From assembly GCA_964057225.1 (NCBI GenBank), contig OZ059897.1, positions 15,004,001 through 15,068,000 of the forward strand: DNA of 64,000 nt. The letters run 5' to 3'. Source of the stretch: Auanema rhodensis. Its lineage: Eukaryota > Animalia > Nematoda. Below are positions 4,843 to 64,000 of the stretch, in pieces. Position numbers and translations under genes: made by a program. The notes under the pieces were generated by a model. It searched no databases. It saw only the letters and a list, made by a program, of their open reading frames with translations, and was not told the origin of the DNA. Numbering within the stretch: the stretch's first letter is position 1; every line of letters begins with the position of its first letter.

Positions 4843-7414
4843 CTATCTTGAAATTCACAGGGAAAAAAATCATTAATCAATTTTCGTGATTAACACTTAC
4901 ATACGCCTTTTGTCTTCTTGGAACTGGAGGGGGGCGAGGGGGGGAAACGGGATCTTCTTCATAACTTCCACCTAATTGAGACTGGAAATATTATTAAATA
5001 ATTAGTGATACAGATATTAAAATCATACCTTGATTAAATTTGTTACATACAAATCAACTGATTTGTATAGGAAAGTATATTGTTCCAACATTTGTACCAT
5101 TGAAGATCTCTGTTTCCGCAAAATTTTAAGAGTGGCAGGAATATCAATAGGACAGGTCAGTCCTAAATATGAATTGAACGCGTGAATATGCAAACTATAT
5201 ATGCACATACCTTTAGTTCTTATTTGATTCAAAAGAACATCAATCATGATAAAAGTTCCAGTTCTACCTATTCCGGCACTGAATACTACTCAATAGGAAT
5301 TAAATTATAAAATACAACAAACCTGCAGTGTACCACTATGGGACCCTGAGGTTCTTTAATTGAATTATAAACGTTGTCTACTTCATCCAAAAATTGTAGC
5401 ACAGGTTCAGGATGATCAGGCCTACCATGATCAGGCCATCCAACGAATTGAAGATGATGTACAGTTCGGGGTGGGCAACCTTTCAATAGATACCAAATTT
5501 TTAAAAATAAAAATAAAGAATAAAACCTTCTTTGTGAAATTTGAATACACGTTTAACAAATGCCTCATCATCCTTGTCGCTATCTCGTTTTAGTACTTCT
5601 TCCACTAAAAATCAAATTCATGAAAGGATATAACGGATAAATGTACCTGTGTTGCAATAGAATCCTCTATAATTCTTCTCTTCTCCAAGATTTGGCCAAT
5701 ATCGGTGACATTTGCTCTCAAATACGAGGAATAGGAAAAAATGTTATTCGGAAACTAACTTTTCCATGTTCATTTTCTTTTGTTGTCATTACGATGACTC
5801 TGACGTTCTCTTGCCAAATCATTCTCCAGAAATCGACAACCTATAATTGTCAAAACATTCAAATCATATTCGTGATCTGCTCACAGTGCTTTCAAAGCAT
5901 CCTTGAGTGGATATATATTCCCGTACATTATCCAAGCGAAGTCTTTCATTATTGGGAAACTAAAAAACAAAGACACTAATCATATCAGCTTAATATTAGA
6001 AAACCCTGATATAGCTAGCATTAATATAGTCATTATCGCATGGATCTTTCGGATTAGCCTCCACTTGCAGAACGACTCTTAAATATCAACGTATATGTTT
6101 ATTAAACTCAATCTATTCGAAAACCTCGTTTGGTCGAAAGGAACAATATTTCTATAACGATTTTTTGGAATGTTTTGTTCTTTCTTGCCAATTCTACAAG
6201 AGAGTAATTGATCATCATCTTGTGGAATTCTCTGCAATGATAATATGACGTGAATTACCAAAAATCATAAAAGGAAATACTCAAGAAAATGAAATATTGG
6301 AAAAAAACCTCAAACTCTTCAGCGAATCCGTTTTTCTTCGTTTGTGGATCATATTCAGCAAGAAGACGGATTCTTTCACTGATAGCATCGGCAGGAACAC
6401 ACGTTGATGGAATAAGCTAAATTTTCATAGATAAAATACATTAATCCCGAATTTATGTTACTGTTATGAGATGAACAACGCGTAATGTTTCCTGTTCAAC
6501 CATTGGACTAAGGTTGTAGTGTGCAAGTAGTTCTCTAACAGAAGAGAATTCATCACCACCTCCTACGTTATACATCCCGCTCTGAATATGTAATAATTAT
6601 ACTATGACAAACTGCATAACACAAGGATAAATCATGTGATATTTCAACAGTAATCTAATGAAAAAACTTTTTACTCAATAGAAGCTTAAACAGACTTGTG
6701 TGTTTTTCTCAATAAGAATGTGCACAGTTGAATGCGTAGTCTTAACAGTTATAACATAAGAACCCGGTGCTCGTTGACTATCTCTGTAAATCTTTTGATC
6801 ACGACACATTTTGAAGCAGTGCGCAACCTAACAAGAAAAGTCCATTGCTTTTCTTTGGCAAGAAGATGTTCGGCTTCTACCCCAGTTAAATTAACATGAA
6901 ACCACCTTTCAGCAGTAGGTGCCCGCACCTCATGTGCGGCCGGCTCACTGATAGGTATAGTTACCGGCCTCCTAAAAAAAAATATATATATATATAAACA
7001 AACATTGAAATTGATATTATACTTTAAAACTATTATAGAGCCATTAGTTTCTTGAAGTTGATCAGGATTATCTATGTAATGCTGCACAAGGGAAGGTAGA
7101 GAATCGAAAGTATCCCCCCCGTGCAATCCCAGGAATCGTCCCAAGTTATAAGAAACTTTTACATGAGTTATGGAAGTGCCACGTCTAAAAACAGCAGAAA
7201 TCAGCAGATAACAATGTAATTTAACAAACTTTATAGACAGAGTATAATTGGTAGGTTGGGACTCACTAGGCCTAGCAAGAAATTCGCCATCCTTACCATA
7301 CTTGTTTAGTAGTCTTTCGGCTTCTTCTCCAGTGACATTATAGAAGAAATTACAACTTCTCATGGAGCTATAAACTAATGATATAATGAACAAATAAAAA
7401 AGAAACTACCTCAT
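4843..7414 (-). CDS. ptp-2: SH2-domain protein tyrosine phosphatase (SHP2/corkscrew orthologue)
   Basis: Two SH2 domains (FLARPSES; [15 protein letters not shown]), [43 protein letters not shown] and QRSSMVQ. Pro-rich tail. The last codons are uncertain. Confidence 0.93.
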
Positions 7415-25325: not shown

Positions 25326-27993
25326 ATGGATGATGCAAGTCCAACTGTTTGTAATTATGTTTATGAAATTAATTGTTCAATTTCAATTGTTTCAAGTTCT
25401 ACGTCTTGTAAAAAAGGTTCTATTAATGCCAAACAAGCTATACTAACACTAGGGAGAAATGCTCAGAGGTTTTGATTTCTGTTTGTGTTTAGTTTTAGAA
25501 TTCTTTTTTTAGGGACATTCTTTTGCAAATTCAACTTTTATCAGGAAAAAATGGTGGTCATCCTACAGTTGCATCGTATCCTCTTAAAAGTTGTTTAGTA
25601 CATCAAGCATTAATAGGACAAGGAAGAGGCAGTATTGTGATTCCGTCTAAGTAGGATCCAAGTATTTATACTTTTTTTGAAAATATATTTCAATTTAAGG
25701 GAATTGATTGTTCAGTTTAATAATTGTGCTCCGAGGAAATTAAATGTTTTCCTTAAATCTCTTCAAGCCAAATTGGACCTTATGAAATCTAATGATATTA
25801 CTAAAACTCCTATGAATGCCAGGTTTATTATATATATATATGGCACTGATTAATTTTTGCTTATAGGTCTGCGCTTTGTAATGGGTTACCTAATGTTTTT
25901 AATGTACTAAGTCCTTTAACAATAGGAGAAATTAGAAATGTTAGGAGGTACAAAAACAATTTATCTATTACTATGAGTATATGATGATCTTAAGGTTACG
26001 TGGGGTCGCTACGGGGGAATCACCTTTGGCAAAGGGAATTAAAGTTTCTGGAACTCCTAAGCGGGTACTTGGAGTTAGGAATGTTCAAGCGACAACTCCT
26101 ACAGCACGATTGAAACGACCTTCTAATCAAGAAGAAGTGATATTTTAGATGATATGAGTTTTTCAAAAATATTTATAGATAGTATTTGAAAGAGTTACTT
26201 TAACTGAAGAACAAAAAAAAGTGGTTCGAGCGGTGGTAAGGGATAAAATGAATATCTTCTTTACTGGAAGTGCTGGCACTGGTAAATCCCTAATTTTACG
26301 AAGAATTATTGAGTTGCTACCTGCTTCATCAACTTTTGTAACTGCTGCTACTGGTAAGTGCTTGAGTCTTTGTTCTTGTATAAATGCATTAACTCAGGAG
26401 TGGCAGCATGTCAGCTAGGAGGCATAACACTTCATAGTTTTGCTGGTATTGGTATTGGCGCTGGTCCGCCTGAAAATTTATTCAAAGTCTTAATCTTAGA
26501 AAATAATTATCTAATGTTTTACTTTTTAGTTGGCTTCTTCTAATCCAGCCACCATTAAACAGTGGAAGAATTGTAGTCATTTGATAATCGATGAAATCTC
26601 GATGATAAATGCTGATTACTTCACAGCTTTGGAATATGTAAGTGACTCATTGAAAATTATGTTTTATTTTTTCAAGGTTTCTCGAAATATACGTGGGATT
26701 GATCGTCCATTTGGTGGAATACAACTAATCATAACTGGAGACTTTTTGCAATTGCCACCTGTTACCAAAGATGGGAAGGAGCCTTCTTTTTGCTTTGAAG
26801 TTCGTTATATTGTTTTAATTTTTGTAAACTTTACTTCACAGAGTGGAGCGTGGAATAAGGCGATTCATAAAACAATCTTATTGAAAGATGTAAAACGCCA
26901 AGATGATCAAATTTTTGTTGATGTTTTACAACAAATACGCTTAGGGCGGTTAGTGTAATCAGAGCAATGCTTAAACTTATCATAATCGTTTTTAGATGCG
27001 ATCCTAAATCTGTCACAATCTTGAAAAGCACAAAAGAAACTAATTTTGAATCTCGTGGGATCGTCCCAACTAAGTTGTGTACGCATACAGCTGATGCCGA
27101 CATTATCAATCTGAAAAGCTTAGATCAATTGAATGGTAAATTTAAGAATTGTAATGCAAATTAATAGTTCGATTTAAGCTCCCTGCAAAGAATTCAAATG
27201 TGACGAAAATTATAGAATACCGGATAAGCTCAAAGTCATAATACCGAAAGTGCTCAATCTTAAAGAGGGTGCTCAGGTTATGTTAACTAAAAACTTGGAT
27301 TTGACCCGAGGACTATCTAACGGTTCCCGTGGAGTGGTAAAAGGTTTTTCTAAACATGGTCTACCAATGGTAAAATTCGCGTCTATTCAAGAGGAAATTG
27401 AGGTGATTTTTGTCAAATTGGGATTAACTTTTTAAATAAGCTTACAGATTCGGCCAGTGCTATTTTCTGTCAGAATACCAGGCGTTGAAGAAAATGTTTG
27501 GAGAAAACAATTGCCTCTTCAATTAGCTTGGGCTATTTCAATTCACAAATCTCAAGGGCTTACTCTTGATGCTGTTGAAATGTCACTCTCTAGGTATTAT
27601 TTTTTTGGCTCTTTTTGGTAATTAAAAGATAACTCGTTGTCATCGAACTATTTATGTTTTACATTAATTGAGAATGAAGTTTTTTCTGAAAACAAAAAAT
27701 CTAGAGAAGAGTTTTGAAATTTGGTTTAATTTTGAATATATTTTTTTCAGAGCGTTTGCAGAAGGGCAAGCATATGTTGCACTCTCACGTGCTCGTAGCT
27801 TAAATTCTGTAAAAATCATTGGATTTGATACTTCTGTCATAAAAGCAAACAAAAAAGTTCTTAAGTATGCCTTTTTTATTCCCAATTTTTAAATAAAAAA
27901 TATTGTTTCAGATATTATGAAAGTTTTTGTGTTGAGGAAGAAGATGATGTAGATGACTTTATCATAAGAAAACGTAGTAGACTCAGTGTTTGA
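25326..27993 (+). CDS. pif-1: PIF1 5'-3' DNA helicase
   Basis: [77 protein letters not shown] and [11 protein letters not shown]. Confidence 0.96.
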
Positions 27994-36404: not shown

Positions 36405-38958
36405 GAATCAAAGAATTTTTGATACAATTTCTGCGAGCGTTGCCAATGAATATGCTGGCCAGTTAATACAATTTGTAAGTTATTCTGGGTTTCATATAAG
36501 GTTGAGTTGCAAATAAACTAATCGAGGTTTAGGATGAGTCAGTCATTCATTCATACGAAGAAAGGGAAGTCAATTTTGCTAAGCTGAATGAAAAATATAG
36601 GTTTTGATTAGAACCAACTACATGAATAAACTATGATGTTTTTCAATTTAGGGAGTATTTATTTGAAGGAGATATGCTGATTCCTCTAGATAATTTAGAG
36701 AAGATTGTAGATGAAAACGGAAATCCTAGTAGTCGAGCTAAAAGGTAATTACGATATGATCGTTTACGTATTTTATCTATATTAGTCTTTGTGTAGAAAG
36801 GCATTTGTTAACCATGAATATCCTGCTACTATCTGGTCTGGAGGAGTTCCGTATGTTCTAAGCAGAACTTTGAGTTAGTAACTTATAAAACACAATTTTA
36901 AGTTTTAACTCATTGATATAATCTATTTTTAGCTCCTGGGGCACGTGCTTCTATTATTCGTGCCATCAATTTTTGGCAAAAGGAGACTTGTATTAATTTT
37001 AGACAACGAAAAACTGAACGCCAATATTTGGATTTTATTGGGAATGATGATGGATGCTGGAGTACTGTCGGAAAAGATAACCTATATGGTCGTCAAGTGG
37101 TTAGCATAGGACTAGGTTGTGAACATGTGAGTTATCATCATTATTTTTGAAAAAAAATTGAATATTTTCTTGGAAAAAAACCCTAAAACTATTTTTTTTA
37201 AACTTTTGATTTGTAGTTTGGTGTAACATCTCATGAGCTCGCTCATGCTCTAGGTGTTTTTCATGAGCAATCTAGATGGGATCGAGATGGAAGCGTTCGT
37301 CTAAATACTCGAGTAGTTCATGGATCTTTACTCTTCAATTTTGCCAAGGTAAACAAAATATAAAATCGAAAAATATGTCTTTGTCACAGATTCCAAAAAC
37401 AGAATTGAATAATTACAATATGCCATATGATATTGGAAGTGTTATGCATTACACGCCAACTGAGTAGGGAACATATTACTTTTTGCTATTAAAATCAAAT
37501 ACATTTGAGGTTTTCAAACAATCCTAGAGTACCAGCTTTGTTAGCTGTTGATCCAAATTTGCAACAAACTATGGGTCAAATGGAAGGTCCTTCCTTCCTT
37601 GATGTAGCCATTCTAAACCAACATTATCATTGCCATAGTACATAACTTCTGATCAAATGTCGCAAACTTTAGTAATACTTTTAGAACTCTGCAAAAATAC
37701 TTTGAATTGTCAGAATGGAGGATTTATTGATTCTAGAAATTGTAATGCTTGCAAGTCAGTGTATTATTTGAAATTTCCTTTTAATTATTTCTGACTAGAT
37801 GTCCTTCTGGATTTGGTGGAGCTCTATGTCAGAACGTAGCCAGTTCGTTCTCTGAAGGTTTTATCTTAAATTTTATTGTTTTCTAGTACCTGTTTTAGGC
37901 TGTGGAGGCATTTTGAAGGCTGAAGAAGCTGTTCGAAGATTCGACATTACTATCAAGCAAATAGGGAACATTAAAGATAAAATTTGTGTCTATCATATTC
38001 AGGTATGTCTGTTTTATGAGAAAATTAACTTTCCCTTTTATAGGCTCCAGCAGGAAAACGTATTCTGGTCAATATAATTAAACTAGAAGGTCGTTGTTTA
38101 GAAGGATGCTATCAGGATGGAAGTGAATTTAAAATGAAACAAGATTTTCGTCCAGTAGGATACAGGTAAAACCAAACACATTTTTTTAACGAGAAAATCA
38201 AATTACAACGTAAGCATATCATATCTGATTGTTGTTTAAGTTGTTTATAAACAGCACACACCAAGTTACTACTCATTCATTTCCAACAATGACATCTGTA
38301 GATACTTATGTATTGTTTTTTTCTATTTAAGCTCTTAATCTCCCTTCAAGTTTTTTTTATGATTCTAGTAGCTTTTGATAACAATAGTTTCTAGTATTTT
38401 GGATCAGAGATTAACTTCGTCATCAATGTACATATTTACATGATATATCATATGATGGCTGCTTCTATACATATAATGGGATTGACAAAAAGTTTGAAGG
38501 TATTTTGGGTCACATGAGTAGACATTGATTTGATAACTAAAATCTCAAAAACCGCTTCTAAATAAGGTTATGAGTTTGAAAAAGATCAAAAATTTTATGT
38601 CTGGATCACATTTTTTATATATTAAACATGTGGTTATTTTAATATATTTTATAATTTATAGGTTTTGCTGTAAATCAAATAATCAACGACTTTTATCTCA
38701 GACGAATTTAGTGCCATTCATGGTCTATTCTCGTAAGAAAACTGTCAGCTTATCGTTTGAATATACTATTGGTAAATATAAAATTATATAAAATTAATAC
38801 ATATAAGTATCATTTTCTATACAGTTGAAAATCGAGCTGCATTTGATGATCCAACCAAAACAATAGCAGAAGATGACGAAGGATTTGTCCCAGAAGATTT
38901 GATGAAAGAATCCTTATCAGCAAATATAGATGCTGTACCGGAAGTTGTAATAATTTAA
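36405..38958 (+). CDS. Astacin (NAS-family) metalloprotease with EGF and CUB domains; 5' end uncertain
   Basis: YLFEGDMLI prodomain, GCWSTVG, HELAHALGVFHEQSRWDRD (HExxHxxGxxH), YDIGSVMHY Met-turn, CQNGGF..CKCPSGFGG and CUB-like CVYHIQAPAGKRI. Confidence 0.9.
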
Positions 38959-39109
38959 AACTTAATTGTATACTTAATATATAAGTTTTTTTAATTGTAT
39001 TCATTAATTTTAGTTTTTAAATTATTTTTTGAACTGACTATATTTGAAAATAAAAATTATTTATTTATTTAAAGTTAAATTATCTTTTTTAGTTCATAAA
39101 ATGTACAAT

Positions 39110-39131
39110 AATATATATATATATATATATA
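39110..39131. repeat. (AT)n microsatellite
   Basis: Run of AT dinucleotides. Confidence 0.85.
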
Positions 39132-40512
39132 AATACATATATTATAAATTTAATACCAATTCATTTACATATCAGATAATTTTTTCATATATTTGTTAAA
39201 TTGGTAATTAGTCTGATTTTCGGAGAAAGTTAATACATCATAAAGCAAGTCATTATAAATCTTTCTATCTATTGAGTATAGCTGTTTAACACTTTAATAC
39301 TGAAATCTTTCTTTTGATATGTTTGAGTATTTTCGAAAAAAAAAGTACATTCAGTCTATATTAAACGTCATATTTCATATAAACCTTTTTATATTTTATT
39401 CTTTTAATAAGTTTTTGAAAGACATCTTTTCGAAAACATCTTTTTTTCTTTATATTATAATATTTTTTTAAATTTTCAATTCATAACGTTAAAATATATC
39501 AAATTCTTGTATTTTTCATACTACGACTATATATGAATGTAAAAACATCTAAAGACGTTAATAATATAAGACCGTTTGTATCAATTTTAATAATATAATA
39601 TTTCAATATAAATAGATCTATTTGGACTGTAACTATATTTCTAATTTTATAAAATTTATTTCCCATTCTCATTCAAATTACATAGTTTTTGAGAATGACG
39701 TCTGCTCAGCCGACTAGACCCCTATAATTATGAACCAGCGCAAGATCTGTGCTAACTCTGCAAATTATATTCAGTTACTGGTAACTAAGCGTTGAGACAG
39801 TTAATATAGCTCTGTATAGCTAGTTCTAGTTCTTTTCTTTTTTATTAAAATTTTTATGTTTATTTGGAAATTTTCATATATTGATAGTTATATTAGGGTT
39901 TGATCATATATGGATCATGCATATTAAGTTATGATATGACTTGGCAATAATTGGAAATAAATAGATATAAGAATATTGAAATATAATAATTGAAATAAAC
40001 CCAATATCTATAAGTTTTCATTGTTTGTTGGATCATATCGAGTATTATCTATTTTAATATTTTTGTTTCCAATATTCTTTAACGGGCATTTCTCATATAA
40101 ATTAATTTTTGTATCTTATTCATACAAATGAAGATCACTAATTTCTATTAATTTATTATAATATTATTTTTATCTATATAATAGAAAAATATTAATCAAG
40201 AAGAGATGAAACATAAATTATAGTTATATTCATTGGAATATGATGATAAAAGAATTCATAACTAATGTACTTTTTTTTATAATTTGTCCTTTATTCGTTT
40301 AAAGAAAGTTGATATGAGCACATTTCTCAGACAAATTTATCATTCAATTTCGTCTAAAAATAAAATTATCAGTTCAAAATCAATTCAATAAGATATGTTC
40401 ATCAAAGACTGAGTTAAAATCCTAAAATGCTCTGGGACTGATAAAACAGGAAACAAATACGAGGCTATTATATATTGTTGTTCGGAGAATTATCAGAAAA
40501 ACTCCGAAGAAG

Positions 40513-40536
40513 ATATATATATATATATATATATAT
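40513..40536. repeat. (AT)n microsatellite
   Basis: Run of about 12 AT dinucleotides. Confidence 0.85.
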
Positions 40537-41119
40537 GAAGCAATTGAATTCAAAATACTTAATTATCCTTTACTTTCTTTATTTTTGTATAATTTATAAC
40601 AATATTAGTAGATGTATGATTCTTTTTTTTTGAATCATCTATTATAATTTATCAGATGATATTCTTTTGTTGTTATTATTAAATATACAAATTGCATTAT
40701 AATATTATAGAATATTGTAATATTTCAAATGTTTTCTGCTTATATCAAAATAAATTCAAATTGTATCATAAAACAGAAAACAACTATTTCTTTATGAAAC
40801 ATTTTTGAAGCTACAGTTTCTCCAATCCTTTTGAATATCGACAAATTTGCGAGAGTTGTTCATTTCTGCATAAGCAATTTGATTTAATAATTTGACGTAT
40901 ATAAGGAATTTTTATAAAAAAGCCAATGATTTCGTATTGGTAAGTTTGATTTAATAATCCATGTTTACGATTTGTTTCTTTAGTTTATTATCTTTCGTAT
41001 TTCTATGGTAATTTTATAATATTTTCTACATAATTCGACAACTATTGTCTTTTAACATCAACTTTTAAGGTTTTTTGTGACAGAGAGAAATCCTTTTTTT
41101 TATACTTTTTAGTAGAAAA

Positions 41120-42893
41120 ATGGATATATTCTCATATGCTGATCCGAATGCAATTGCATTAACATCTCCGTCTACACATATGGTTCAATCTACTACACCA
41201 TTTCTTGTTATAGATCAAGTTGAGGTAATTTAAGAACAAACTTTTCAATTGAATTAAAAAGGAAAACTTATATTACAGGGAGATTTATTAGCTACAGGAT
41301 CACTCATGAATATATCTGTTAATAGTACAGTACAATATGTTCCAATAGTAACAGCTGGTATAGTATTTACTACATTATGTGTTGTTGGAGCATTAGCAAT
41401 CATTTTATTCATATTGGTACTAATAGTTGGACATAAAACATTTAACGAAGTAAGTTGAAAATATTAAAATCTTTTAAATTTTTTAAATTTTTTGTATTTA
41501 GTTTCCATTTTTCATCATTGTCTGGCACTTAACTATAACGAATGCTGTACATGTATCTTGTGTTATAACTTCAATTTTACCTCTCATGTTACTCAATGTA
41601 AGTCTTATTTGTTTCTAATTATTCATTATTCTTATGTTTTTTCAGTTAAATGATGATAATATCGGTATATGGTACACATGGGCATCCAGAATTATTGCAA
41701 TCACTGAGCAAGCTGCCTTATATCTTACATTTCTTATGACAATTAATCGTTTCGTAGTCTTTGTACTTCCTAATATGTCTATTTACTTTAATAAGTAGGC
41801 TATTACATCAAACTAATTATATTTTACTTGTTATTATCATTATTTTACAGAACGGGAATTATGATAATGGCTATGATAATATGGGTATATGTTTTCTTTA
41901 TTGTTTCATGGAATGTAGCATATGGTACTATCAAAGTATTTAGCAAAAAGAAATTAAAAGCATTAACCCTTGTGGATCAACTCTTAGGTGGCAATTTCTT
42001 AACACAGGTAAATAACAAGAAGATTTCGCTGTTTGTTTCTTGCAACTTCCTGTGTTGTTCAATACAATATCATTGATCTATTCGCAAATTTCAGTTTTTC
42101 AATTTATGTTTTACTATTTTGCCTGTTATTATGTTAGGCATGTATGCAATAATAGTTGTGGTAATTATCAAAAAACGATCCAGTGCAGAACTTTCAACAA
42201 ATAAAATTAGTAGAAGAGATCAGTCATTTTTATGGCAAGCATTTGTCGTTACATTGGCATTAGAGGTATAGAATTAATTTGTTATAATCAAATATATATA
42301 ATTTTCATTTTTTAAGTTATGTAATCTTGCTGCAATGTTTTCATTTTTTTTTAAAGATAAAGGTGAAATTATTCAATGGAGTTATACAATATTTAACTAC
42401 AGGTGAATCTTTTTAAAATCATTGAAATTAATATAGTTATCACTATCATTAGAACTTTTTTTTTCAAATATTGAAATTAGTTGAATTTTCAGAAAGATGT
42501 TTTATTTGAAAAATGTAGAAAAAACAGAGTAGAAAAAACTTTTAAATATGATTATCATGAATTCAACAGAAATAATTTTAAATTTACTCAACAAAGCAAC
42601 ACAGATCAGATATTAACATAAAATTTATAAATGACGTTTTATATTTCAGTACATCTATATTCAATCAAATAGTAAATCCTGTTATATCATTAACGTGTAA
42701 TCGAATGGTTAAAAGGACTTTGATCAAAATTTTCAAACGGGAATTATATTTGAAATGGGTTAGCGAAACAAGTGAACCTGCAGTACAGCTTCCGAAAAAT
42801 CAAGCTTCATGTTTATCTCGTTTTAACCGTATGATTCCATTGATGAGATTACCATCATCACGTAAAACAACTCTTGTAACAGAAGTTCACTGA
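41120..42893 (+). CDS. Seven-transmembrane serpentine (rhodopsin-like) receptor
   Basis: Multiple hydrophobic exons, FLMTINRFVVF (DRY-equivalent) and NQIVNPVI (NPxxY-equivalent). Confidence 0.75.
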
Positions 42894-52500: not shown

Positions 52501-55500
52501 TATTGATCAGTTAATATCTTTTGTTGGAGGTAAGGAAGTTCTATTTTCAGTATAAATCCGTTTATAATTTAGGTGTTGATTTGTGCTTTGGTCGATGGGA
52601 TGATGACCAACATTTGTTAACTGATTTAGGTTCCGTTCAGTTTACTCAGCAACATGCTTTTAATCAAGATCATTCATTAGTATGATGCTTTCCATTACAT
52701 GTTTCATCACGTATTTTAGGCTTCTGGACTCAGAGCTTTAGTGAGTGCTCCATTAACATTGGGTCCATTAGGATTGGAAGAGCATGAAAATGTGGTTCCG
52801 ACGGACGTATCTAAACCAATAGAACCTGAGCATTCAATTCCACATGGTAATCCACATGTTATTAGAACAGTTGATTATTTTGTTTTTCAGTTTGTCCCGA
52901 AGGGTCGAATTCTACTTGTGAACGACAGGTGTTCAAATTTATTCCAACGTTCGTTTGATATTTATTGTTGTTACAGGTTACATCTATTATTGTTACGGAA
53001 GGTGAAGATGTTGTCGATAGCACCGTAGCACCTGCACACAAGCAGGAACAAGAAGAGGTTTGTTTTGCTCCTACAACAGTTCCTTTAAGTATTATATATA
53101 TATATATTTAACATAAGTGTTTCAGGTTGTGTTCACCGATAAAGAAACTGGAGGTGTCATGGTTAGGATTTTGAGAAAAAGTAATTTTAGTGGGTATTGA
53201 CTCTTTATAACTTTCTCTTTAGTGAGTAAACAATCGAAGCCTGCAGAATTAAAATATTCACGTCATTCTACCCCTCCAACAATGCTTACAGCCGGAGATA
53301 GATCGTCTCAAGTTTCAGTTAACTCTGATAAAAAAGATAAAAAAGATGACACAAAGGAGAAAGCAGTGGGATTTAAAGAGTTTAGTAGTATTTTTCAAAA
53401 AATATATGCTTCAGGCTGCTCGAGTAAAAAGAGCAGTTTCCGCTGATAGAAAGAAAATTCCATTGGAAGTTTTGAATGAAGCGGGCCCAGCTCCTTCACT
53501 TTTTGATAAAGCTGCCAGAAGTGGAATGGATTTAGCAACAGCTGCAGAAAAGTATAAAGCTTATGTGAATAGTGGGGCTATTCAAAAGGTAAGATGAATC
53601 TATAATATTCCTAATGCTTCTATACGTCGTAGGAGAAACATCGCTCACAAACCCCACCAATGAAGCGAAAAGAGAGTCGTCTTACTAGGGTTGTCGATAA
53701 CTGGAAAAGTAATCGTGCTAAACGAAAATGGAAGGAAGTCTTGGATACAGATGATCCGACCGCAGGTTATGAACTTGATTGGTTGCGACTGCAAAAGAAA
53801 GTAGTTTAGTTCTTTCTTTCCGAATTTTTAAAACATGCTCTATTAGGAAGAAGAGGAATGCGTTGATGGAGGAGTTAAATTGTGGGTTGGAAAAGATTAT
53901 GTTAACTTCATTCATAAAGATTTTGTTGAAGTCGATATGCCTTTCCATGGTATATATTTATAATGTTTACAATTGCTCTATCCGATTCCTTCTACAGATT
54001 TTATTGATCGCGGTAGAACTCCAAGAATGCCTTGGCATGATATTCATTCTGTAACATTTGGTATGCCTGCTAGAGATGTAGCAAGACATTTTATTCAAAG
54101 ATGGAATGCTACTAAAACTGAAAAGCTAAAAGATGACAATAACTATCCATATCTCTTGCCAAAAACTTACGAAAATTTAAAAGTACCTCGTGTATTCAGA
54201 AATGCTAGATTTAGTGAGAATGTTGATGTACAGGTTGGTGTTTAACTTCATATTTTCTCAGTTCTCTCTTTCTTTTAGGTGCTACGTTCCTTGTCCAATT
54301 GGTCTGGACTCATCAATCAGACAGAAGATTCGATTCAAATGGCCTACCTCTCTCTTATAGCTAATTCAAAGGTATTAAATTACTAATTAATATTTTAAAA
54401 ATAAAAATACCTTTTTTAGCATTATATTTATATTGAAAATCAATTTTTTGTATCCATGATTGACTCAAATGATGTATCCAACGAAATTTGTAAAGTCCTG
54501 TGCAATCGTATAATTCGTGCACACAAGTAAGTATCTCTTAATTCATGCTGAAAATATATACTTTTTTTATAGAGATAAAGAAAATTTTCGTGTTTACATC
54601 ATGATTCCTCTTCTACCCGGATTTGAAGGCGATGTCGGAGCACCAGGTGGATCTTCTCTTCAAGCCGTCCTTCATTGGACTTACCAATCTCTTAGTCGAG
54701 GACCTCATTCTTTGATTGAACGATTGAAAACGGTTATTCCCGATCCATTCAAATATCTAAGTATTGGATCTCTTAGGACTTATGATATGCTAGGAGGAAA
54801 GCTTGTATGTTTTTTCCCTTTAATTTATAATAACGCTAAGCTTCTAGGTTACTGAATTAATTTATATTCATTGTAAATTACTCATCGTAGATGATGAGCA
54901 TGTTATAATTGGTTCAGCAAATATTAATGATCGTTCTCAGGTTTCTCATTTACAATTCATTTACATAGTTTTGTGTATATCATTTAGGTTGGAAATCGCG
55001 ATTCTGAAGTGTGTTGTTTATATACTGATATCGTCAAAGAGCAAAGTATGATGGATGGAAAACCTTATCAAGCTGGCCGATTTGCCAAAAGCTTGCGATT
55101 ACAGTGTATGAAGGTATACAATAATGTTCCGAATCCTATGTTGATATATAATTTTTAGGAACATCTTGGTTTACTTTCTAATTGCCGTCGTCCGTCGAAA
55201 TTCATGTATGAAATTACTTGCGATGACCCTGTTGCTGATGCGTTCTTTGTTGATATTTGGCAATCAACAGCTAGCTCAAATACTAGAATTTATGAAGAGG
55301 TTAGTTAATGTTTATCTGAAAAATCTGATATTGTACACGAATATACATTAAACATGTTTGTTTTTAAAGGTTTTCCGTGCTTATCCAACTGATAATGTGG
55401 AAACCTTCGATGAGTTCCAAAAATGGACTGGTCAGATGCCACTAGCTGAATATTCTCCTCAACAGGCTGAAGAAAAAATGAGGGATATCAAAGGTATCTC

Positions 55501-55647
55501 TGACGATTATAAACTTTGAAAATTGTTATATCTTCTAATTGTTTAGGTACTCTGGTGGAATTCCCACTGAATTTCTTATGTAAGGCAACTTTAACTCCAG
55601 GAATAACATCCAAAGAAGGTCTTATTCCAAATGCAGTATTTACATAA
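49586..55647 (+). CDS. pld-1: Phospholipase D (PX-PH-PLD)
   Basis: PX region ([12 protein letters not shown]), [19 protein letters not shown] motifs HHEKLIVID and [26 protein letters not shown] and GSANINDRS. Confidence 0.96.
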
Positions 55648-56111
55648 TTTATTTCATTGCCCATATTTTAATTTTAGTATTTTTTTCATATTTTCACGAT
55701 ATTTAATTGATACATTTTTTTAACAATCAGCTGCTCTTGTCTTCTTCTTTTTCCTCTTTAGGAAGAATGTCCCAACATATGTTATGCATAGCCTCCGGTG
55801 CTTTCTGCTCGTGCAAATTGAAAAACACAGAAAAATAATGCAAATGTATATAAATATATATATTTAATCGCTTTTACCTGCTTTTGTGATAGTGTATAGA
55901 TAATTTAATGATATACCGCATATGAAATCCGTATCTAATTTAATTTCTTACTTTAAGCTGGCTTTTCATATTTACTAAATCTTCGTTAATAACATCTTTA
56001 ATTTTTAATTTTATTTCTTTATTAAATCAGGAATGTTTCTACGTTTTATATACATCTATATACATATTTATAATTGGTTATATGTTGAACTCAATTGAAA
56101 TTCAGAAGTCC

Positions 56112-57761
56112 ATGTCCGAAGAGCAAGCTAAAAAGCCTCTTGTACCTGGGCCCCCCGCTCCATTACCACAGTTCTCAATGCCATCAACCGGCTTTACTCC
56201 TCCTAAACCTCCTGTATTACACCCTAATGTGAAAAACATGAAAGGTGAAAAACAAACAAATCCATTTGCTTCTAGAAAACCAAAGGTTTTAATTTCTTAT
56301 CATGGTTAATTTAAATACTATTTAAGACGGTTGTTAAAACAGAAAATCAAAATGTTAAAAGTAATCCGATAAAGGAAGAAGAAGTTAAGCCTGTACCTAA
56401 AGAGGAAAACGTTGTTACCCAACCACCGGTGGAAATTAATAATGAAATCGATAGAGAATCAGAAAACAAAGCTGAATCTAAAACATTTGATGAGAGATGC
56501 AATGCCGACCCTACTCTGCAAAACAATCGCTTGCTGACTTCTGATAATAAACAACAAGAATTACATCTTGAAGTACTTATATATAACTTAAATTTGAACT
56601 TTTAAAATGTTGTCTCTTCAGAAATCTGAGCTTGTCGATGCAATAACTCCCGAAAAAAAAGTGAGAGATGATAGCATTACATCGGATAAAGTTGATTCAT
56701 CTTCTATGGAAGCTTCTACTCTTCCAAGTGATAGGGTATGATAATATTATGCGAAAATGTTAAGTGGTATTATAAACACTAGATTGACATGACCGCTGGC
56801 TTAATGGGTTGGCTTTCCAAAACCATGACAGAAAGTAAACTCCTATCCGATGTTGCTGTGAAAGCTCGAGTATGTTCTTGGGAATTGAAAAAGTGCTAAA
56901 TCATCTAATTATAGTATGGCATGGAACAAGTAATTATAACTTTAGATCCAGGAATGAAAGGTTTTTTATCTCGAGATGGAGTAGTAAGTAGCACATAGGC
57001 TTCACCTCAATCAATTTATTATTTAAAGGTAGATTTATACGTCTCTTTTGAAAATCAAGACCAAATAAAAGCTGTACATGAAGGGTTTGAGCGAGTATTT
57101 GCTAACGTGCTTATCCGAAATGTTCCAACTGGTAAAGGTATTGTAAACTATGAAAACACCATTTGAAAACTTTGTTCAGGTGATTTACCTGATACTGTAT
57201 ATGGTTCATCGTATTCATTGGATATGTGTCGGAAAAGAGTCAGCAAAATTGTTCTATCAAGACTTGTTCCTGCTGATTCGGCTATTCTAGTGTTTCAGCC
57301 ATTTCTCCTTCATTTCGATGAAAAGTAATTTCTTAACATACTATTCCTTGAAAATCCCTACACCTAGGCTATATGCTGCGACTCGTTTGTTCCTACAATG
57401 GAAAGAGCATGAATTGAATGCGATTACCCAACTTTTGGAAGTTTCTCAGCCTGTTTATGAACTTTTGAATGCATGTTAATACTCCATGAAAGAAAAAATA
57501 CTCTTTATTTAGACGAGATCAAAGGCAGAAGGAATGAAGCAGCATGACTATCCTATTACTGTCACTACTGCTGCACAAGAGGTATTAGATATTCCCTTTT
57601 CTTATTTAAAAATTAAAAATGTTAAGGTTTATGGATTCAAAGAAGAGACCTGGGCAGGTCCCTCACCTCCGTATTCATTTACAGAGTTGTTGACCCCCGC
57701 ATCCTCAGCTGTAGCTCTGAATTTTATGAATTTAAGTATTTCACTATCAAATGAAGAATAA
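56112..57761 (+). CDS. PRRC1-like protein (Pro-rich N-terminus, NTPase-like C-terminal domain)
   Basis: Pro-rich N-terminus, GLMGWL..VAVKA..MEQVIITLDPGM and KAVHEGFERVF, resembling PRRC1. Needs a GC-AG intron at 57471-57512. Confidence 0.75.
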
Positions 57762-57948
57762 TCACTTAATACTGATTGGGGAATATAATATACTAACTGT
57801 GATCTATACAATTCACTGGTCTTATTGAACTTTGCTTTTAAAAGGGTTTATTTTAACCATCGACATATGCTATAATTTGCTTAGAAATAAAAGTATATAA
57901 TAACAAGTGCATATTTACGAAATTTATGTTCTCAAATTAAAAACTAAA

Positions 57949-57971
57949 CCCATACGACATACGGAGATTCA
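57949..57971 (+). promoter_or_regulatory. Candidate proximal sequence element (snRNA-type promoter) of U3, repeated in every unit
   Basis: CCCATAC-N3-ATACGG-N-GAT-N-CA sits at about -57 to -35. It is kept at identical spacing in the otherwise diverged flank of copy 1 and in all internal spacers. Confidence 0.6.
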
Positions 57972-58005
57972 AATGATACGGTTCAGAGAAAACAGTGAAT
58001 CTTTG

Positions 58006-58190
58006 AAATCATACTACACAGAATCATTTCTGTAGTTTGTATTTCACATTCCCTTTTAAACTTCGACACATGTTGACCGCGGTGAAAGGGTAATGAGCAG
58101 GTTGCGAGCGTGAAGAACTTCTTCGGAAGTTGATGACCGCGAGCTAGCCGGCAACGGAAAGCTTTTGTAATCTGCTCATCTGAGCGGTTT
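58006..58190 (+). ncRNA. U3: U3 snoRNA, copy 1
   Basis: Box A'/A (AUCAUACUACACAGAAUCAUUUCUGUAG), terminal stem ACCGC/GCGGU, box C'-like GUGAAAG, 13-bp central stem, box B GAGCGUGAAG (58106-58115), cUUCGg hairpin, box C UGAUGA (58131-58136), GCAA hairpin and box D CUGA (58180-58183). Ends are +/-3 nt. Confidence 0.93.
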
Positions 58191-58376
58191 TAATCGGTTA
58201 ATCATGAAGGAAACTGAAAGAGTTTCAACTGGACTTCACTTCTTCGACCTTCTTGCATCACTCCCCATGCTGCTTACGGCTCTGTCAGGCTACATCAGGC
58301 TCTATGGCAGCCTATACATCCCATACCAAATACGGCGATCCAGTTAGTTCTCTTCAGAGAAAACAGTGATTCTTTG

Positions 58377-58561
58377 AAATCATACTACACAGAATCATTT
58401 CTGTAGTTTGTATTTCACATTCCCTTTTAAACTTCGACACATGTTGACCGCGGTGAAAGGGTAATGAGCAGGTTGCGAGCGTGAAGAACTTCTTCGGAAG
58501 TTGATGACCGCGAGCTAGCCGGCAACGGAAAGCTTTTGTAATCTGCTCATCTGAGCGGTTT
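58377..58561 (+). ncRNA. U3: U3 snoRNA, copy 2
   Basis: Matches copy 1. Confidence 0.92.
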
Positions 58562-58747
58562 TAATCGGTTAATCATGAAGGAAACTGAAAGAGTTTCAAC
58601 TGGACTTCACTTCTTCGACCTTCTTGCATCACTCCCCATGCTGCTTACGGCTCTGTCAGGCTACATCAGGCTCTATGGCAGCGTATACATCCCATACCAA
58701 ATACGGCGATCCAGTTAGTTCTCTTCAGAGATAACAGTGAATCTTTG

Positions 58748-58932
58748 AAATCATACTACACAGAATCATTTCTGTAGTTTGTATTTCACATTCCCTTTTA
58801 AACTTCGACACATGTTGACCGCGGTGAAAGGGTAATGAGCAGGTTGCGAGCGTGAAGAACTTCTTCGGAAGTTGATGACCGCGAGTTAGCCGGCAACGGA
58901 AAGCTTTTGTAATCTGCTCATCTGAGCGGTTT
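58748..58932 (+). ncRNA. U3: U3 snoRNA, copy 3
   Basis: As copy 1 with C>T at 58886 (C-G to U.G pair). Confidence 0.92.
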
Positions 58933-59118
58933 TAATCGGTTAATCATGAAGGAAACTGAAAGAGTTTCAACTGGACTTCACTTCTTCGACCTTCTTGCAT
59001 CACTCCCCATGCTGCTTACGGCTCTGTCAGGCTACATCAGGCTCTATGGCAGCCTATACATCCCATACCAAATACGGCGATCCAGTTAGTTCTCTTCAGA
59101 GATAACAGTGAATCTTTG

Positions 59119-59303
59119 AAATCATACTACACAGAATCATTTCTGTAGTTTGTATTTCACATTCCCTTTTAAACTTCGACACATGTTGACCGCGGTGAAA
59201 GGGTAATGAGCAGGTTGCGAGCGTGAAGAACTTCTTCGGAAGTTGATGACCGCGAGCTAGCCGGCAACGGAAAGCTTTTGTAATCTGCTCATCTGAGCGG
59301 TTT
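59119..59303 (+). ncRNA. U3: U3 snoRNA, copy 4
   Basis: Matches copy 1. Confidence 0.92.
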
Positions 59304-59489
59304 TAATCGGTTAATCATGAAGGAAACTGAAAGAGTTTCAACTGGACTTCACTTCTTCGACCTTCTTGCATCACTCCCCATGCTGCTTACGGCTCTGTCA
59401 GGCTACATCAGGCTCTATGGCAGCCTATACATCCCATACCAAATACGGCGATCCAGTTAGTTCTCTTCAGAGAAAACAGTGATTCTTTG

Positions 59490-59674
59490 AAATCATACTA
59501 CACAGAATCATTTCTGTAGTTTGTATTTCACATTCCCTTTTAAACTTCGACACATGTTGACCGCGGTGAAAGGGTAATGAGCAGGTTGCGAGCGTGAAGA
59601 ACTTCTTCGGAAGTTGATGACCGCGAGCTAGCCGGCAACGGAAAGCTTTTGTAATCTGCTCATCTGAGCGGTTT
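59490..59674 (+). ncRNA. U3: U3 snoRNA, copy 5
   Basis: Matches copy 1. Confidence 0.92.
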
Positions 59675-59860
59675 TAATCGGTTAATCATGAAGGAAACTG
59701 AAAGAGTTTCAACTGGACTTCACTTCTTCGACCTTCTTGCATCACTCCCCATGCTGCTTACGGCTCTGTCAGGCTACATCAGGCTCTATGGCAGCGTATA
59801 CATCCCATACCAAATACGGCGATGCAGTTAGTTCTGTTCAGAGAAAACAGTGAATCTTTG

Positions 59861-60045
59861 AAATCATACTACACAGAATCATTTCTGTAGTTTGTATTTC
59901 ACATTCCCTTTTAAACTTCGACACATGTTGACCGCGGTGAAAGGGTAATGAGCAGGTTGCGAGCGTGAAGAACTTCTTCGGAAGTTGATGACCGCGAGCT
60001 AGCCGGCAACGGAAAGCTTTTGTAATCTGCTCATCTGAGCGGTTT
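59861..60045 (+). ncRNA. U3: U3 snoRNA, copy 6
   Basis: Matches copy 1. Confidence 0.92.
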
Positions 60046-60231
60046 TAATCGGTTAATCATGAAGGAAACTGAAAGAGTTTCAACTGGACTTCACTTCTTC
60101 GACCTTCTTGCATCACTCCCCATGCTGCTTACGGCTCTGTCAGGCTACATCAGGCTCTATGGCAGCCTATACATCCCATACCAAATACGGCGATCCAGTT
60201 AGTTCTCTTCAGAGATAACAGTGAATCTTTG

Positions 60232-60416
60232 AAATCATACTACACAGAATCATTTCTGTAGTTTGTATTTCACATTCCCTTTTAAACTTCGACACATGTT
60301 GACCGCGGTGAAAGGGTAATGAGCAGGTTGCGAGCGTGAAGAACTTCTTCGGAAGTTGATGACCGCGAGCTAGCCGGCAACGGAAAGCTTTTGTAATCTG
60401 CTCATCTGAGCGGTTT
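60232..60416 (+). ncRNA. U3: U3 snoRNA, copy 7
   Basis: Matches copy 1. Confidence 0.92.
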
Positions 60417-60602
60417 TAATCGGTTAATCATCAAGGAAACTGAAAGAGTTTCAACTGGACTTCACTTCTTCGACTTTCTTGTATCACTCCCCATGCTGCT
60501 TACGGCTCTGTCAGGCTACATCAGGCTCTATGGCAGCGTATACATCCCATACCAAATACGGCGATGCAGTTAGTTCTGTTCAGAGAAAACAGTGAATCTT
60601 TG

Positions 60603-60787
60603 AAATCATACTACACAGAATCATTTCTGTAGTTTGTATTTCACATTCCCTTTTAAACTTCGACACATGTTGACCGCGGTGAAAGGGTAATGAGCAGGTT
60701 GCGAGCGTGAAGAACTTCTTCGGAAGTTGATGACCGCGAGCTAGCCGGCAACGGAAAGCTTTTGTAATCTGCTCATCTGAGCGGTTT
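60603..60787 (+). ncRNA. U3: U3 snoRNA, copy 8
   Basis: Matches copy 1. Confidence 0.92.
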
Positions 60788-60973
60788 TAATCGGTTAATC
60801 ATCAAGGAAACTGAAAGAGTTTCAACTGGACTTCACTTCTTCGACTTTCTTGTATCACTCCCCATGCTGCTTACGGCTCTGTCAGGCTACATCAGGCTCT
60901 ATGGCAGCGTATACATCCCATACCAAATACGGCGATGCAGTTAGTTCTGTTCAGAGAAAACAGTGAATCTTTG

Positions 60974-61158
60974 AAATCATACTACACAGAATCATTTCTG
61001 TAGTTTGTATTTCACATTCCCTTTTAAACTTCGACACATGTTGACCGCGGTGAAAGGGTAATGAGCAGGTTGCGAGCGTGAAGAACTTCTTCGGAAGTTG
61101 ATGACCGCGAGCTAGCCGGCAACGGAAAGCTTTTGTAATCTGCTCATCTGAGCGGTTT
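60974..61158 (+). ncRNA. U3: U3 snoRNA, copy 9
   Basis: Matches copy 1. Confidence 0.92.
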
Positions 61159-61344
61159 TAATCGGTTAATCATCAAGGAAACTGAAAGAGTTTCAACTGG
61201 ACTTCACTTCTTCGACTTTCTTGTATCACTCCCCATGCTGCTTACGGCTCTGTCAGGCTACATCAGGCTCTATGGCAGCGTATACATCCCATACCAAATA
61301 CGGCGATGCAGTTAGTTCTGTTCAGAGAAAACAGTGAATCTTTG

Positions 61345-61529
61345 AAATCATACTACACAGAATCATTTCTGTAGTTTGTATTTCACATTCCCTTTTAAAC
61401 TTCGACACATGTTGACCGCGGTGAAAGGGTAATGAGCAGGTTGCGAGCGTGAAGAACTTCTTCGGAAGTTGATGACCGCGAGCTAGCCGGCAACGGAAAG
61501 CTTTTGTAATCTGCTCATCTGAGCGGTTT
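61345..61529 (+). ncRNA. U3: U3 snoRNA, copy 10
   Basis: Matches copy 1. Confidence 0.92.
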
Positions 61530-61715
61530 TAATCGGTTAATCATCAAGGAAACTGAAAGAGTTTCAACTGGACTTCACTTCTTCGACTTTCTTGTATCAC
61601 TCCCCATGCTGCTTACGGCTCTGTCAGGCTACATCAGGCTCTATGGCAGCGTATACATCCCATACCAAATACGGCGATGCAGTTAGTTCTGTTCAGAGAA
61701 AACAGTGAATCTTTG

Positions 61716-61900
61716 AAATCATACTACACAGAATCATTTCTGTAGTTTGTATTTCACATTCCCTTTTAAACTTCGACACATGTTGACCGCGGTGAAAGGG
61801 TAATGAGCAGGTTGCGAGCGTGAAGAACTTCTTCGGAAGTTGATGACCGCGAGCTAGCCGGCAACGGAAAGCTTTTGTAATCTGCTCATCTGAGTGGTTT
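61716..61900 (+). ncRNA. U3: U3 snoRNA, copy 11 (variant)
   Basis: C>T at 61895 in the terminal stem (G-C to G.U). Confidence 0.92.
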
Positions 61901-62086
61901 TAAACGGTTAATCATTAAGGAAACTGAAAGAGTTTCAACTGGACTTCACTTCTTCGACCTTCTTGCATCACTCCCCATGCTGCTTACGGCTCTGTTAGGC
62001 TACATCAGGCTCTATGGCAGCGTATACATCCCATACCAAATACGGCGATGCAGTTAGTTCTGTTCAGAGAAAACAGTGAATCTTTG

Positions 62087-62271
62087 AAATCATACTACAC
62101 AGAATCATTTCTGTAGTTTGTATTTCACATTCCCTTTTAAACTTCGACACATGTTGACCGCGGTGAAAGGGTAATGAGCAGGTTGCGAGCGTGAAGAACT
62201 TCTTCGGAAGTTGATGACCGCGAGCTAGCCGGCAACGGAAAGCTTTTGTAATCTGCTCATCTGAGCGGTTT
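62087..62271 (+). ncRNA. U3: U3 snoRNA, copy 12
   Basis: Matches copy 1. Confidence 0.92.
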
Positions 62272-62457
62272 TAATCGGTTAATCATCAAGGAAACTGAAA
62301 GAGTTTCAACTGGACTTCACTTCTTCGACTTTCTTGTATCACTCCCCATGCTGCTTACGGCTCTGTCAGGCTACATCAGGCTCTATGGCAGCGTATACAT
62401 CCCATACCAAATACGGCGATGCAGTTAGTTCTGTTCAGAGAAAACAGTGAATCTTTG

Positions 62458-62642
62458 AAATCATACTACACAGAATCATTTCTGTAGTTTGTATTTCACA
62501 TTCCCTTTTAAACTTCGACACATGTTGACCGCGGTGAAAGGGTAATGAGCAGGTTGCGAGCGTGAAGAACTTCTTCGGAAGTTGATGACCGCGAGCTAGC
62601 CGGCAACGGAAAGCTTTTGTAATCTGCTCATCTGAGCGGTTT
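62458..62642 (+). ncRNA. U3: U3 snoRNA, copy 13
   Basis: Matches copy 1. Confidence 0.92.
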
Positions 62643-62828
62643 TAATCGGTTAATCATCAAGGAAACTGAAAGAGTTTCAACTGGACTTCACTTCTTCGAC
62701 TTTCTTGTATCACTCCCCATGCTGCTTACGGCTCTGTCAGGCTACATCAGGCTCTATGGCAGCGTATACATCCCATACCAAATACGGCGATGCAGTTAGT
62801 TCTGTTCAGAGAAAACAGTGAATCTTTG

Positions 62829-63013
62829 AAATCATACTACACAGAATCATTTCTGTAGTTTGTATTTCACATTCCCTTTTAAACTTCGACACATGTTGAC
62901 CGCGGTGAAAGGGTAATGAGCAGGTTGCGAGCGTGAAGAACTTCTTCGGAAGTTGATGACCGCGAGCTAGCCGGCAACGGAAAGCTTTTGTAATCTGCTC
63001 ATCTGAGCGGTTT
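62829..63013 (+). ncRNA. U3: U3 snoRNA, copy 14
   Basis: Matches copy 1. Confidence 0.92.
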
Positions 63014-63199
63014 TAATCGGTTAATCATCAAGGAAACTGAAAGAGTTTCAACTGGACTTCACTTCTTCGACTTTCTTGTATCACTCCCCATGCTGCTTAC
63101 GGCTCTGTCAGGCTACATCAGGCTCTATGGCAGCGTATACATCCCATACCAAATACGGCGATGCAGTTAGTTCTGTTCAGAGAAAACAGTGAATCTTTG

Positions 63200-63384
63200 A
63201 AATCATACTACACAGAATCATTTCTGTAGTTTGTATTTCACATTCCCTTTTAAACTTCGACACATGTTGACCGCGGTGAAAGGGTAATGAGCAGGTTGCG
63301 AGCGTGAAGAACTTCTTCGGAAGTTGATGACCGCGAGCTAGCCGGCAACGGAAAGCTTTTGTAATCTGCTCATCTGAGTGGTTT
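63200..63384 (+). ncRNA. U3: U3 snoRNA, copy 15 (variant)
   Basis: C>T at 63379, same variant as copy 11. Confidence 0.92.
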
Positions 63385-63570
63385 TAAACGGTTAATCATT
63401 AAGGAAACTGAAAGAGTTTCAACTGGACTTCACTTCTTCGACCTTCTTGCATCACTCCCCATGCTGCTTACGGCTCTGTTAGGCTACATCAGGCTCTATG
63501 GCAGCGTATACATCCCATACCAAATACGGCGATGCAGTTAGTTCTGTTCAGAGAAAACAGTGAATCTTTG

Positions 63571-63755
63571 AAATCATACTACACAGAATCATTTCTGTAG
63601 TTTGTATTTCACATTCCCTTTTAAACTTCGACACATGTTGACCGCGGTGAAAGGGTAATGAGCAGGTTGCGAGCGTGAAGAACTTCTTCGGAAGTTGATG
63701 ACCGCGAGCTAGCCGGCAACGGAAAGCTTTTGTAATCTGCTCATCTGAGCGGTTT
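63571..63755 (+). ncRNA. U3: U3 snoRNA, copy 16
   Basis: Matches copy 1. Confidence 0.92.
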
Positions 63756-63941
63756 TAATCGGTTAATCATCAAGGAAACTGAAAGAGTTTCAACTGGACT
63801 TCACTTCTTCGACTTTCTTGTATCACTCCCCATGCTGCTTACGGCTCTGTCAGGCTACATCAGGCTCTATGGCAGCGTATACATCCCATACCAAATACGG
63901 CGATGCAGTTAGTTCTGTTCAGAGAAAACAGTGAATCTTTG

Positions 63942-64000
63942 AAATCATACTACACAGAATCATTTCTGTAGTTTGTATTTCACATTCCCTTTTAAACTTC
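63942..64000 (+). ncRNA. U3: U3 snoRNA, copy 17 (5' part, cut by window edge)
   Basis: Box A'/A and hinge are present. Confidence 0.85.

Follow-up and report, generated by a model that had tools for sequence, protein, structure and literature searches.

Introduction

The small nucleolar RNA (snoRNA) U3 is needed by every eukaryote for 18S ribosomal RNA (rRNA), and its genes normally number from one to a handful. Tandem arrays are familiar for 5S, spliced leader (SL), U1, U2 and U6 genes, known examples being 5S ribosomal DNA (rDNA), the SL1-5S repeats of nematodes, the U1/U2 genes of sea urchin and Xenopus, and human RNU2. Across 147 fungal genomes, almost all have at most three U3 genes and the maximum is 10-11 (PMC5832005), while one U3 gene is reported for trypanosomatids and at least 14 for Euglena, in which tandem U3 genes were not found by PCR (PMC2784804). 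In king crabs (Lithodidae), U3 has been described as 'massively proliferated' from Rfam-type annotation, with the arrangement, intactness and promoters of the copies undescribed (PMC8086120). Here we describe a locus of the nematode Auanema rhodensis, at the end of a 64,000-nt stretch of contig OZ059897.1 (positions 15,004,001 to 15,068,000 of the forward strand; hereafter the window), at which, compared with the U3 genes of other eukaryotes, at least 16 copies lie in tandem, with read depth pointing to about 60 to several hundred.

This kind of array is already known for other small RNAs, and it is U3 as the arrayed gene that is unusual. In common with the 5S, SL1-5S and U1/U2 arrays, the locus consists of short head-to-tail units, each with one complete gene and its own putative promoter, and has homogenised copies, a diverged edge, higher-order repeats and apparent variation in copy number between samples; it differs from them in that the amplified gene is U3 and in the very compact unit of 371 bp. 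King crabs and this nematode are both animal lineages with multiplied U3, though a tandem organisation is established only here. The full-text literature searched, in which coverage of subscription journals is thin, yielded no account of U3 genes in tandem for nematodes or any other group.

Results

A U3 gene occupies half of each unit of a tandem array

Tandem Repeats Finder (TRF) reported a single array that comprises 16.2 copies of a 371-bp period, at 99% matches and without indels, and slicing it resolved 16 complete units followed by an 84-bp partial unit at the window end (Table 1). The G+C content is 44% in the array and ~33% in the rest of the window. An Rfam scan (cmscan) of the whole 64 kb at the gathering threshold, which for the U3 family (RF00012) is a cut-off of 34 bits, returned 16 full-length U3 matches (model positions 1-219, 82.8-84.5 bits, E ~5e-17) and no other RNA family in the window. 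U3 lies at unit positions 25-208 (184 nt), and in the 187-bp spacer no Rfam match with an E-value below 5 was seen that could indicate a second RNA gene. A non-coding satellite, with a unit that lacks a gene, was considered and is ruled out by the intact U3 gene that makes up half of every unit.

A reading made earlier from the sequence alone had interpreted the apparent satellite as a compact, homogenised array of at least 17 U3 genes separated by ~186 bp. The Infernal check with RF00012 was strongly positive for each of the 16 complete units, and the 99% identity, the spacer length and the blocks of identical units described below bear out the compactness and homogenisation. The count needs adjusting: by TRF, slicing and Rfam, 16 genes are complete and the 17th is a partial copy at the window edge.

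The predicted U3 fold is unusually stable, with a minimum free energy (MFE) of -64.6 kcal/mol and z = -4.6 relative to shuffled sequences, none of which (0/200) folded as well. It contains the 5´ hairpin, a 13-bp stem and hairpins capped by UUCG and GCAA. Forcing the terminal stem between ACCGC (U3 position 72) and GCGGU (position 180) costs little and yields a canonical 3´ domain; in the MFE and constrained folds, this domain is closed by the terminal stem, which joins box C´ to box D, and includes the box B/C hairpin. Every stem and hairpin named in the sequence-only reading is thus present. The boxes likewise were located in the order it had given: an A-like box AUCAUUUCU at U3 position 19, C´ (GGUGAA) at 77, B (AGCGUGAAG) at 103, C (UGAUGA) at 127 and D (CUGA) at 176. 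The C´ box differs from UGAUGA, with the GA retained. Compared with the Rfam U3 model, the RNA shares the full-length match, boxes A, C´, B, C and D, the 5´ hairpin and the 3´ domain, but is short, with 184 nt against 219 model positions, and has 4 nt in the loop of the box B/C hairpin where the model has a 29-nt insert.

Relatives of the array were also looked for in metagenomes with a pattern of box B followed by box C. The 28 loci that matched included none recognised as U3 by Rfam, and we regard them as chance matches. In a search for other U3-bearing contigs, no products of the short open reading frames (ORFs) within the unit were on record.

Independent reads support the tandem joints and a large copy number

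We compared the contigs of four public runs with positions 55500-58360 of the window. Three of these runs (X1, X4 and X9) are DNA datasets under three organism labels, and the fourth (X10) is a run that we guess to be RNA. The joint between one unit and the next (58351/58352 to 57981/57982) is crossed by contigs in X1, X4 and X9, and a single 17,485-nt X4 contig contains the junction between the unique flank and unit 1. The word depth of the contig that covers the U3 core (58005-58157) was 4112 in X4, against 70.8 for the flank (~58-fold), and 1118 in X9, against ~19 (~59-fold); in X1, the summed depth of the unit was 270,000-490,000 against ~900 for the flank (~300-500-fold), where word depth is a rough proxy rather than a copy number and overlapping short contigs can inflate the sums. 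Taken together, these depths suggest that copies of the U3 unit across the genome number roughly 60 to a few hundred, possibly varying by sample.

Read depth had been proposed as a check against a single-copy artefact, and in all three DNA datasets the unit lies far above the flank. That the assembler multiplied one or a few U3 genes has nothing in its favour beyond the usual trouble of assembling near-identical repeats; given a unit depth at least 58-fold over the flank in independent datasets, a tandem joint in three of them and an ordered pattern of differences between units at 12 positions, we assign it a negligible probability. The number of copies taken from the window by itself, on the other hand, proved to be an undercount, with the window being the edge of what is by depth a much larger family. 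A U at U3 position 181 (window position 58185) accounts for 68-82% of the read depth but is found in 2/16 window units, and several spacer variants frequent in the reads (58196 T, 58265 A) are in none of the window units. Since the majority unit type of the reads is a minority in the window, what the window contains would be either the edge of a larger array, made up of minority-type units, or one of several arrays.

A 587-nt contig of X9 tracks the flank of the window up to 57941 and then has 26 unlike letters in place of the motif described below and the array, in a dataset in which the unit is still at ~59-fold depth. In the X9 organism, the array may thus have another left junction or another location.

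Variation avoids U3 and has the pattern of unequal exchange

The 16 complete units vary at 12 of their 371 positions. Variant sites of the 3´ flank include unit positions 214, 216 and 226. Two of the 12 are in U3 and 10 in the spacer, with U3 making up half of the unit (Fisher p = 0.036), and both U3 changes, C140U and C181U, convert a G-C pair to G-U in canonical helices with pairing kept. The reads showed a similar bias, with one variant site above 10% in U3 and seven in the 172 nt of spacer 3´ of U3. By spacer type, units 1-6 form one group, units 7-10, 12-14 and 16 another, and units 11 and 15 a third. Units 8-10, 12-14 and 16 are identical to one another, as separately are units 11 and 15, and the distal part of the array forms a four-unit higher-order repeat (Table 1). 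Blocks of identical units together with a higher-order repeat are what unequal exchange leaves behind, and the likeness of the units would be maintained by unequal crossing-over and gene conversion.

These patterns bear on whether the array might be a U3-derived satellite that is largely or wholly silent, with the U3 of the cell coming from dispersed single genes. Recent homogenisation alone could keep the copies intact without selection. Against this, all 16 copies are full-length and have every box, and what variation there is avoids U3 or, within U3, keeps pairing. We return to this alternative below with the expression data.

Each U3 copy is preceded by a promoter-like motif

A 20-nt motif is found at -56 to -37 relative to U3 (Table 1). 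Where 0.05 matches would be expected by chance, the window has 17, and these fall one per U3 copy, including a match in the unique flank before unit 1. The flank around that match (57949-57968) is otherwise unrelated to the array, with positions -36 to -24 only about half identical. This distribution suggests that the leftmost gene retains an older, diverged copy of the motif, which would fit both functional constraint and an escape of the array edge from homogenisation. From its position and conservation, we consider the motif to be proximal-element-like, a candidate proximal sequence element (PSE) that would have a promoter role. No TATA-like box was found around -30, where positions -32 to -25 read TTAGTTCT in the units, and in the distinction between small nuclear RNA (snRNA)-type genes of RNA polymerase II (Pol II) and RNA polymerase III (Pol III), absence of a TATA box at about -30 is on the Pol II side.

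At the other end of the gene, every unit has TTTT immediately after the final base of U3. This run was flagged as terminator-like by a bacterial promoter/terminator scan, which is irrelevant to this DNA except for that flag. Some 20-35 nt downstream of U3 is GGAAACTGAAAGAG, which has only a loose resemblance to the vertebrate 3´ box.

In X10, a 261-nt contig (58002-58262, depth 3.86) consists of U3 and 74 nt downstream, with the remaining spacer uncovered. Its subtype, that of units 11 and 15, contributes ~7% of the X1 DNA depth, and this rarity in DNA argues against plain DNA carry-over. A 3´-extended precursor is the easier explanation, although the observation is suggestive only.

Plant U3 genes are transcribed by Pol III, and the copies described here could conceivably be functional genes of that type that end at the T run; the terminator-like TTTT straight after the last U3 base of every unit is what such genes would have. 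The lack of a TATA-like box near -30 and the X10 contig, which continues 74 nt beyond the T run, are contrary to Pol III transcription, as is the nature of animal U3 genes, which are Pol II genes whose product has a trimethylguanosine cap (PMC7277114). We therefore consider Pol III transcription of the array very improbable.

Dispersed U3 copies exist outside the array

In DNA contigs of X1, X4 and X9, unrelated upstream sequences are joined to U3 at 58001/58002, documenting dispersed U3 copies that are either genes or retrocopies. Because several DNA contigs join other upstream sequence exactly at this point, U3 may truly begin at 58002, three bases before the 58005 of the Rfam match.

For an array that is silent while such copies provide the U3, the points in favour are these loose ends with unrelated upstream sequence in all three DNA datasets and RNA support for the array that amounts to one low-depth contig. 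Set against them, in addition to the intactness of the genes and the bias of the variation noted above, are a promoter-like motif at a fixed distance in every unit, present also in the diverged edge copy, and the 3´ flank of the X10 contig, which is specific to an array subtype. On balance, we find a silent satellite improbable, somewhat less so than Pol III transcription; the array rather than the dispersed copies would then be the source of U3.

Two other groups of contigs were noted. One further set departs from U3 at 58183. In addition, X1, X4 and X9 contain contigs at single-copy depth, from elsewhere in the genome, whose match is confined to the 3´ domain of U3 (58084-58178), with 7 differences; they have AT-rich, unrelated sequence upstream, the similarity beginning near the ACCGC stem. 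The latter represent a 5´-truncated U3-like locus, a pseudogene or a derived box C/D RNA, that is common to all three organisms.

Table 1. Positions of the array, the U3 copies and associated elements in the window
Feature	Position	Strand	Evidence and remarks
Tandem array of 371-bp units, 16 complete and one 84-bp partial	57981..64000	+	TRF; unit-by-unit comparison; X1, X4 and X9 contigs that return 371 bases over the unit joint
Four-unit higher-order repeat (1484 bp): units 11-14, then 15, 16 and partial 17	61691..64000	+	61691-62516 identical to 63175-64000 over 826 bases; haplotype table
Diverged promoter-like motif in unique flank, -56 to -37 of U3 copy 1	57949..57968	+	17/20 match to the in-array motif
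Promoter-like 20-nt motif CCCATACCAAATACGGCGAT, -56 to -37 of U3 copy 2	58320..58339	+	Repeats every 371 bp to 63885-63904
U3 copy 1, 184 nt	58005..58188	+	RF00012 84.5 bits, full model; fold; 5´ end may be 58002, where contigs start
U3 3´ flank, from the start of TTTT, includes GGAAACTGAAAGAG	58189..58262	+	Continues U3 in the X10 contig (probable RNA run)
U3 copy 2	58376..58559	+	RF00012 84.5 bits
U3 copy 3, with C140U (G-C to G-U)	58747..58930	+	RF00012 82.8 bits
U3 copy 4	59118..59301	+	RF00012 84.5 bits
U3 copy 5	59489..59672	+	RF00012 84.5 bits
U3 copy 6	59860..60043	+	RF00012 84.5 bits
U3 copy 7	60231..60414	+	RF00012 84.5 bits
U3 copy 8	60602..60785	+	RF00012 84.5 bits
U3 copy 9	60973..61156	+	RF00012 84.5 bits
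U3 copy 10	61344..61527	+	RF00012 84.5 bits
U3 copy 11, with C181U in the terminal stem	61715..61898	+	RF00012 82.9 bits; allele is the majority in reads
U3 copy 12	62086..62269	+	RF00012 84.5 bits
U3 copy 13	62457..62640	+	RF00012 84.5 bits
U3 copy 14	62828..63011	+	RF00012 84.5 bits
U3 copy 15, with C181U	63199..63382	+	RF00012 82.9 bits
U3 copy 16	63570..63753	+	RF00012 84.5 bits
U3 copy 17, start only, rest cut off by the window end	63941..64000	+	RF00012 35 bits, model positions 1-41 at 63941-63981

Neighbouring gene and other features of the window

Just upstream of the array, on the + strand, is a protein-coding gene that is covered by RNA-run contigs at 56104-57844 and has its stop codon at 57759-57761. 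The contigs define nine introns with lengths of 41-49 nt, of which the one at about 57471-57512 is of the GC..AG type. The first promoter-like motif begins ~190 bp past the stop codon. The sequence-only reading had named the neighbouring genes pld-1 and PRRC1, the latter being this upstream gene; both names are unconfirmed, with Pfam searches of single exons returning blank.

Elsewhere in the window, the ORF at 26530-26958 is similar to PIF1-like helicases (Pfam PF05970, E = 2.6e-17) and may belong to a Helitron-type element, and the region 38001-42000 is AT-rich (24.8% G+C against ~33% elsewhere). A 214-aa open exon with an SH2 domain is found on the - strand at 6749-7393. Among 5.8 billion sequences, it had two protein matches within the length filter, the named one being from Heterorhabditis bacteriophora with 88% identity over 19% of the query; the proteome of the organism appears to be poorly represented in that collection. 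Matches of this exon in the Atlas were to generic SH2 clusters only. The named match, together with the very short introns of the gene before the array, indicates a nematode, possibly one near Heterorhabditis.

Discussion

The locus is a genuine multigene array of intact U3 genes in the chromosome, and we consider it likely that these genes are of the SNAPc-dependent, Pol II snRNA type and that unequal exchange keeps the copies alike. Each 371-bp unit would be a self-contained snRNA-type gene, which lacks a TATA box and consists of the motif at -56 to -37, the 184-nt U3 and a 3´ flank that would hold a signal for 3´-end processing. By analogy with animal U3, transcription would be SNAPc-dependent and carried out by Pol II, with Integrator-type processing of the 3´ end. 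Assembly with the box C/D and B/C proteins would follow, and the RNA would function within the small subunit (SSU) processome in the maturation of 18S.

Several points weigh against this interpretation. The TTTT run right after the U3 3´ end is as found at Pol III genes. The expression support is one contig at a depth of 3.86, and the run it comes from is labelled RNA on a guess; since DNA contigs also end at 58002, the ends of this contig may be branch points of the assembly graph. The dispersed U3 copies may supply the U3 of the cell, and copy number was approached through word depth, with the reservations given above.

A more far-reaching version, which we think unlikely but less so than a silent or Pol III-transcribed array, is that the lineage moved its SNAPc-dependent small-RNA genes wholesale to rDNA-like, homogenised arrays. 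In that case, U3 copies might range from ~60 to several hundred by strain or sister species, with only some subtypes transcribed, such as the one of the X10 contig, and U3 dosage under epigenetic control, as for rDNA.

The array leaves the understanding of U3 function unchanged. It does carry a practical warning, as the probable main U3 locus of this organism would be hidden by repeat masking and collapsed in short-read assemblies. For ribosome biogenesis, the amplification may bring a dosage benefit, as the sequence-only reading suggested. The array offers a natural system in which to ask whether gene dosage, together with that of rDNA, sets the supply of U3, what happens to SNAPc-type genes spaced only 371 bp apart, and in what way concerted evolution shapes what would be a Pol II small-RNA gene.

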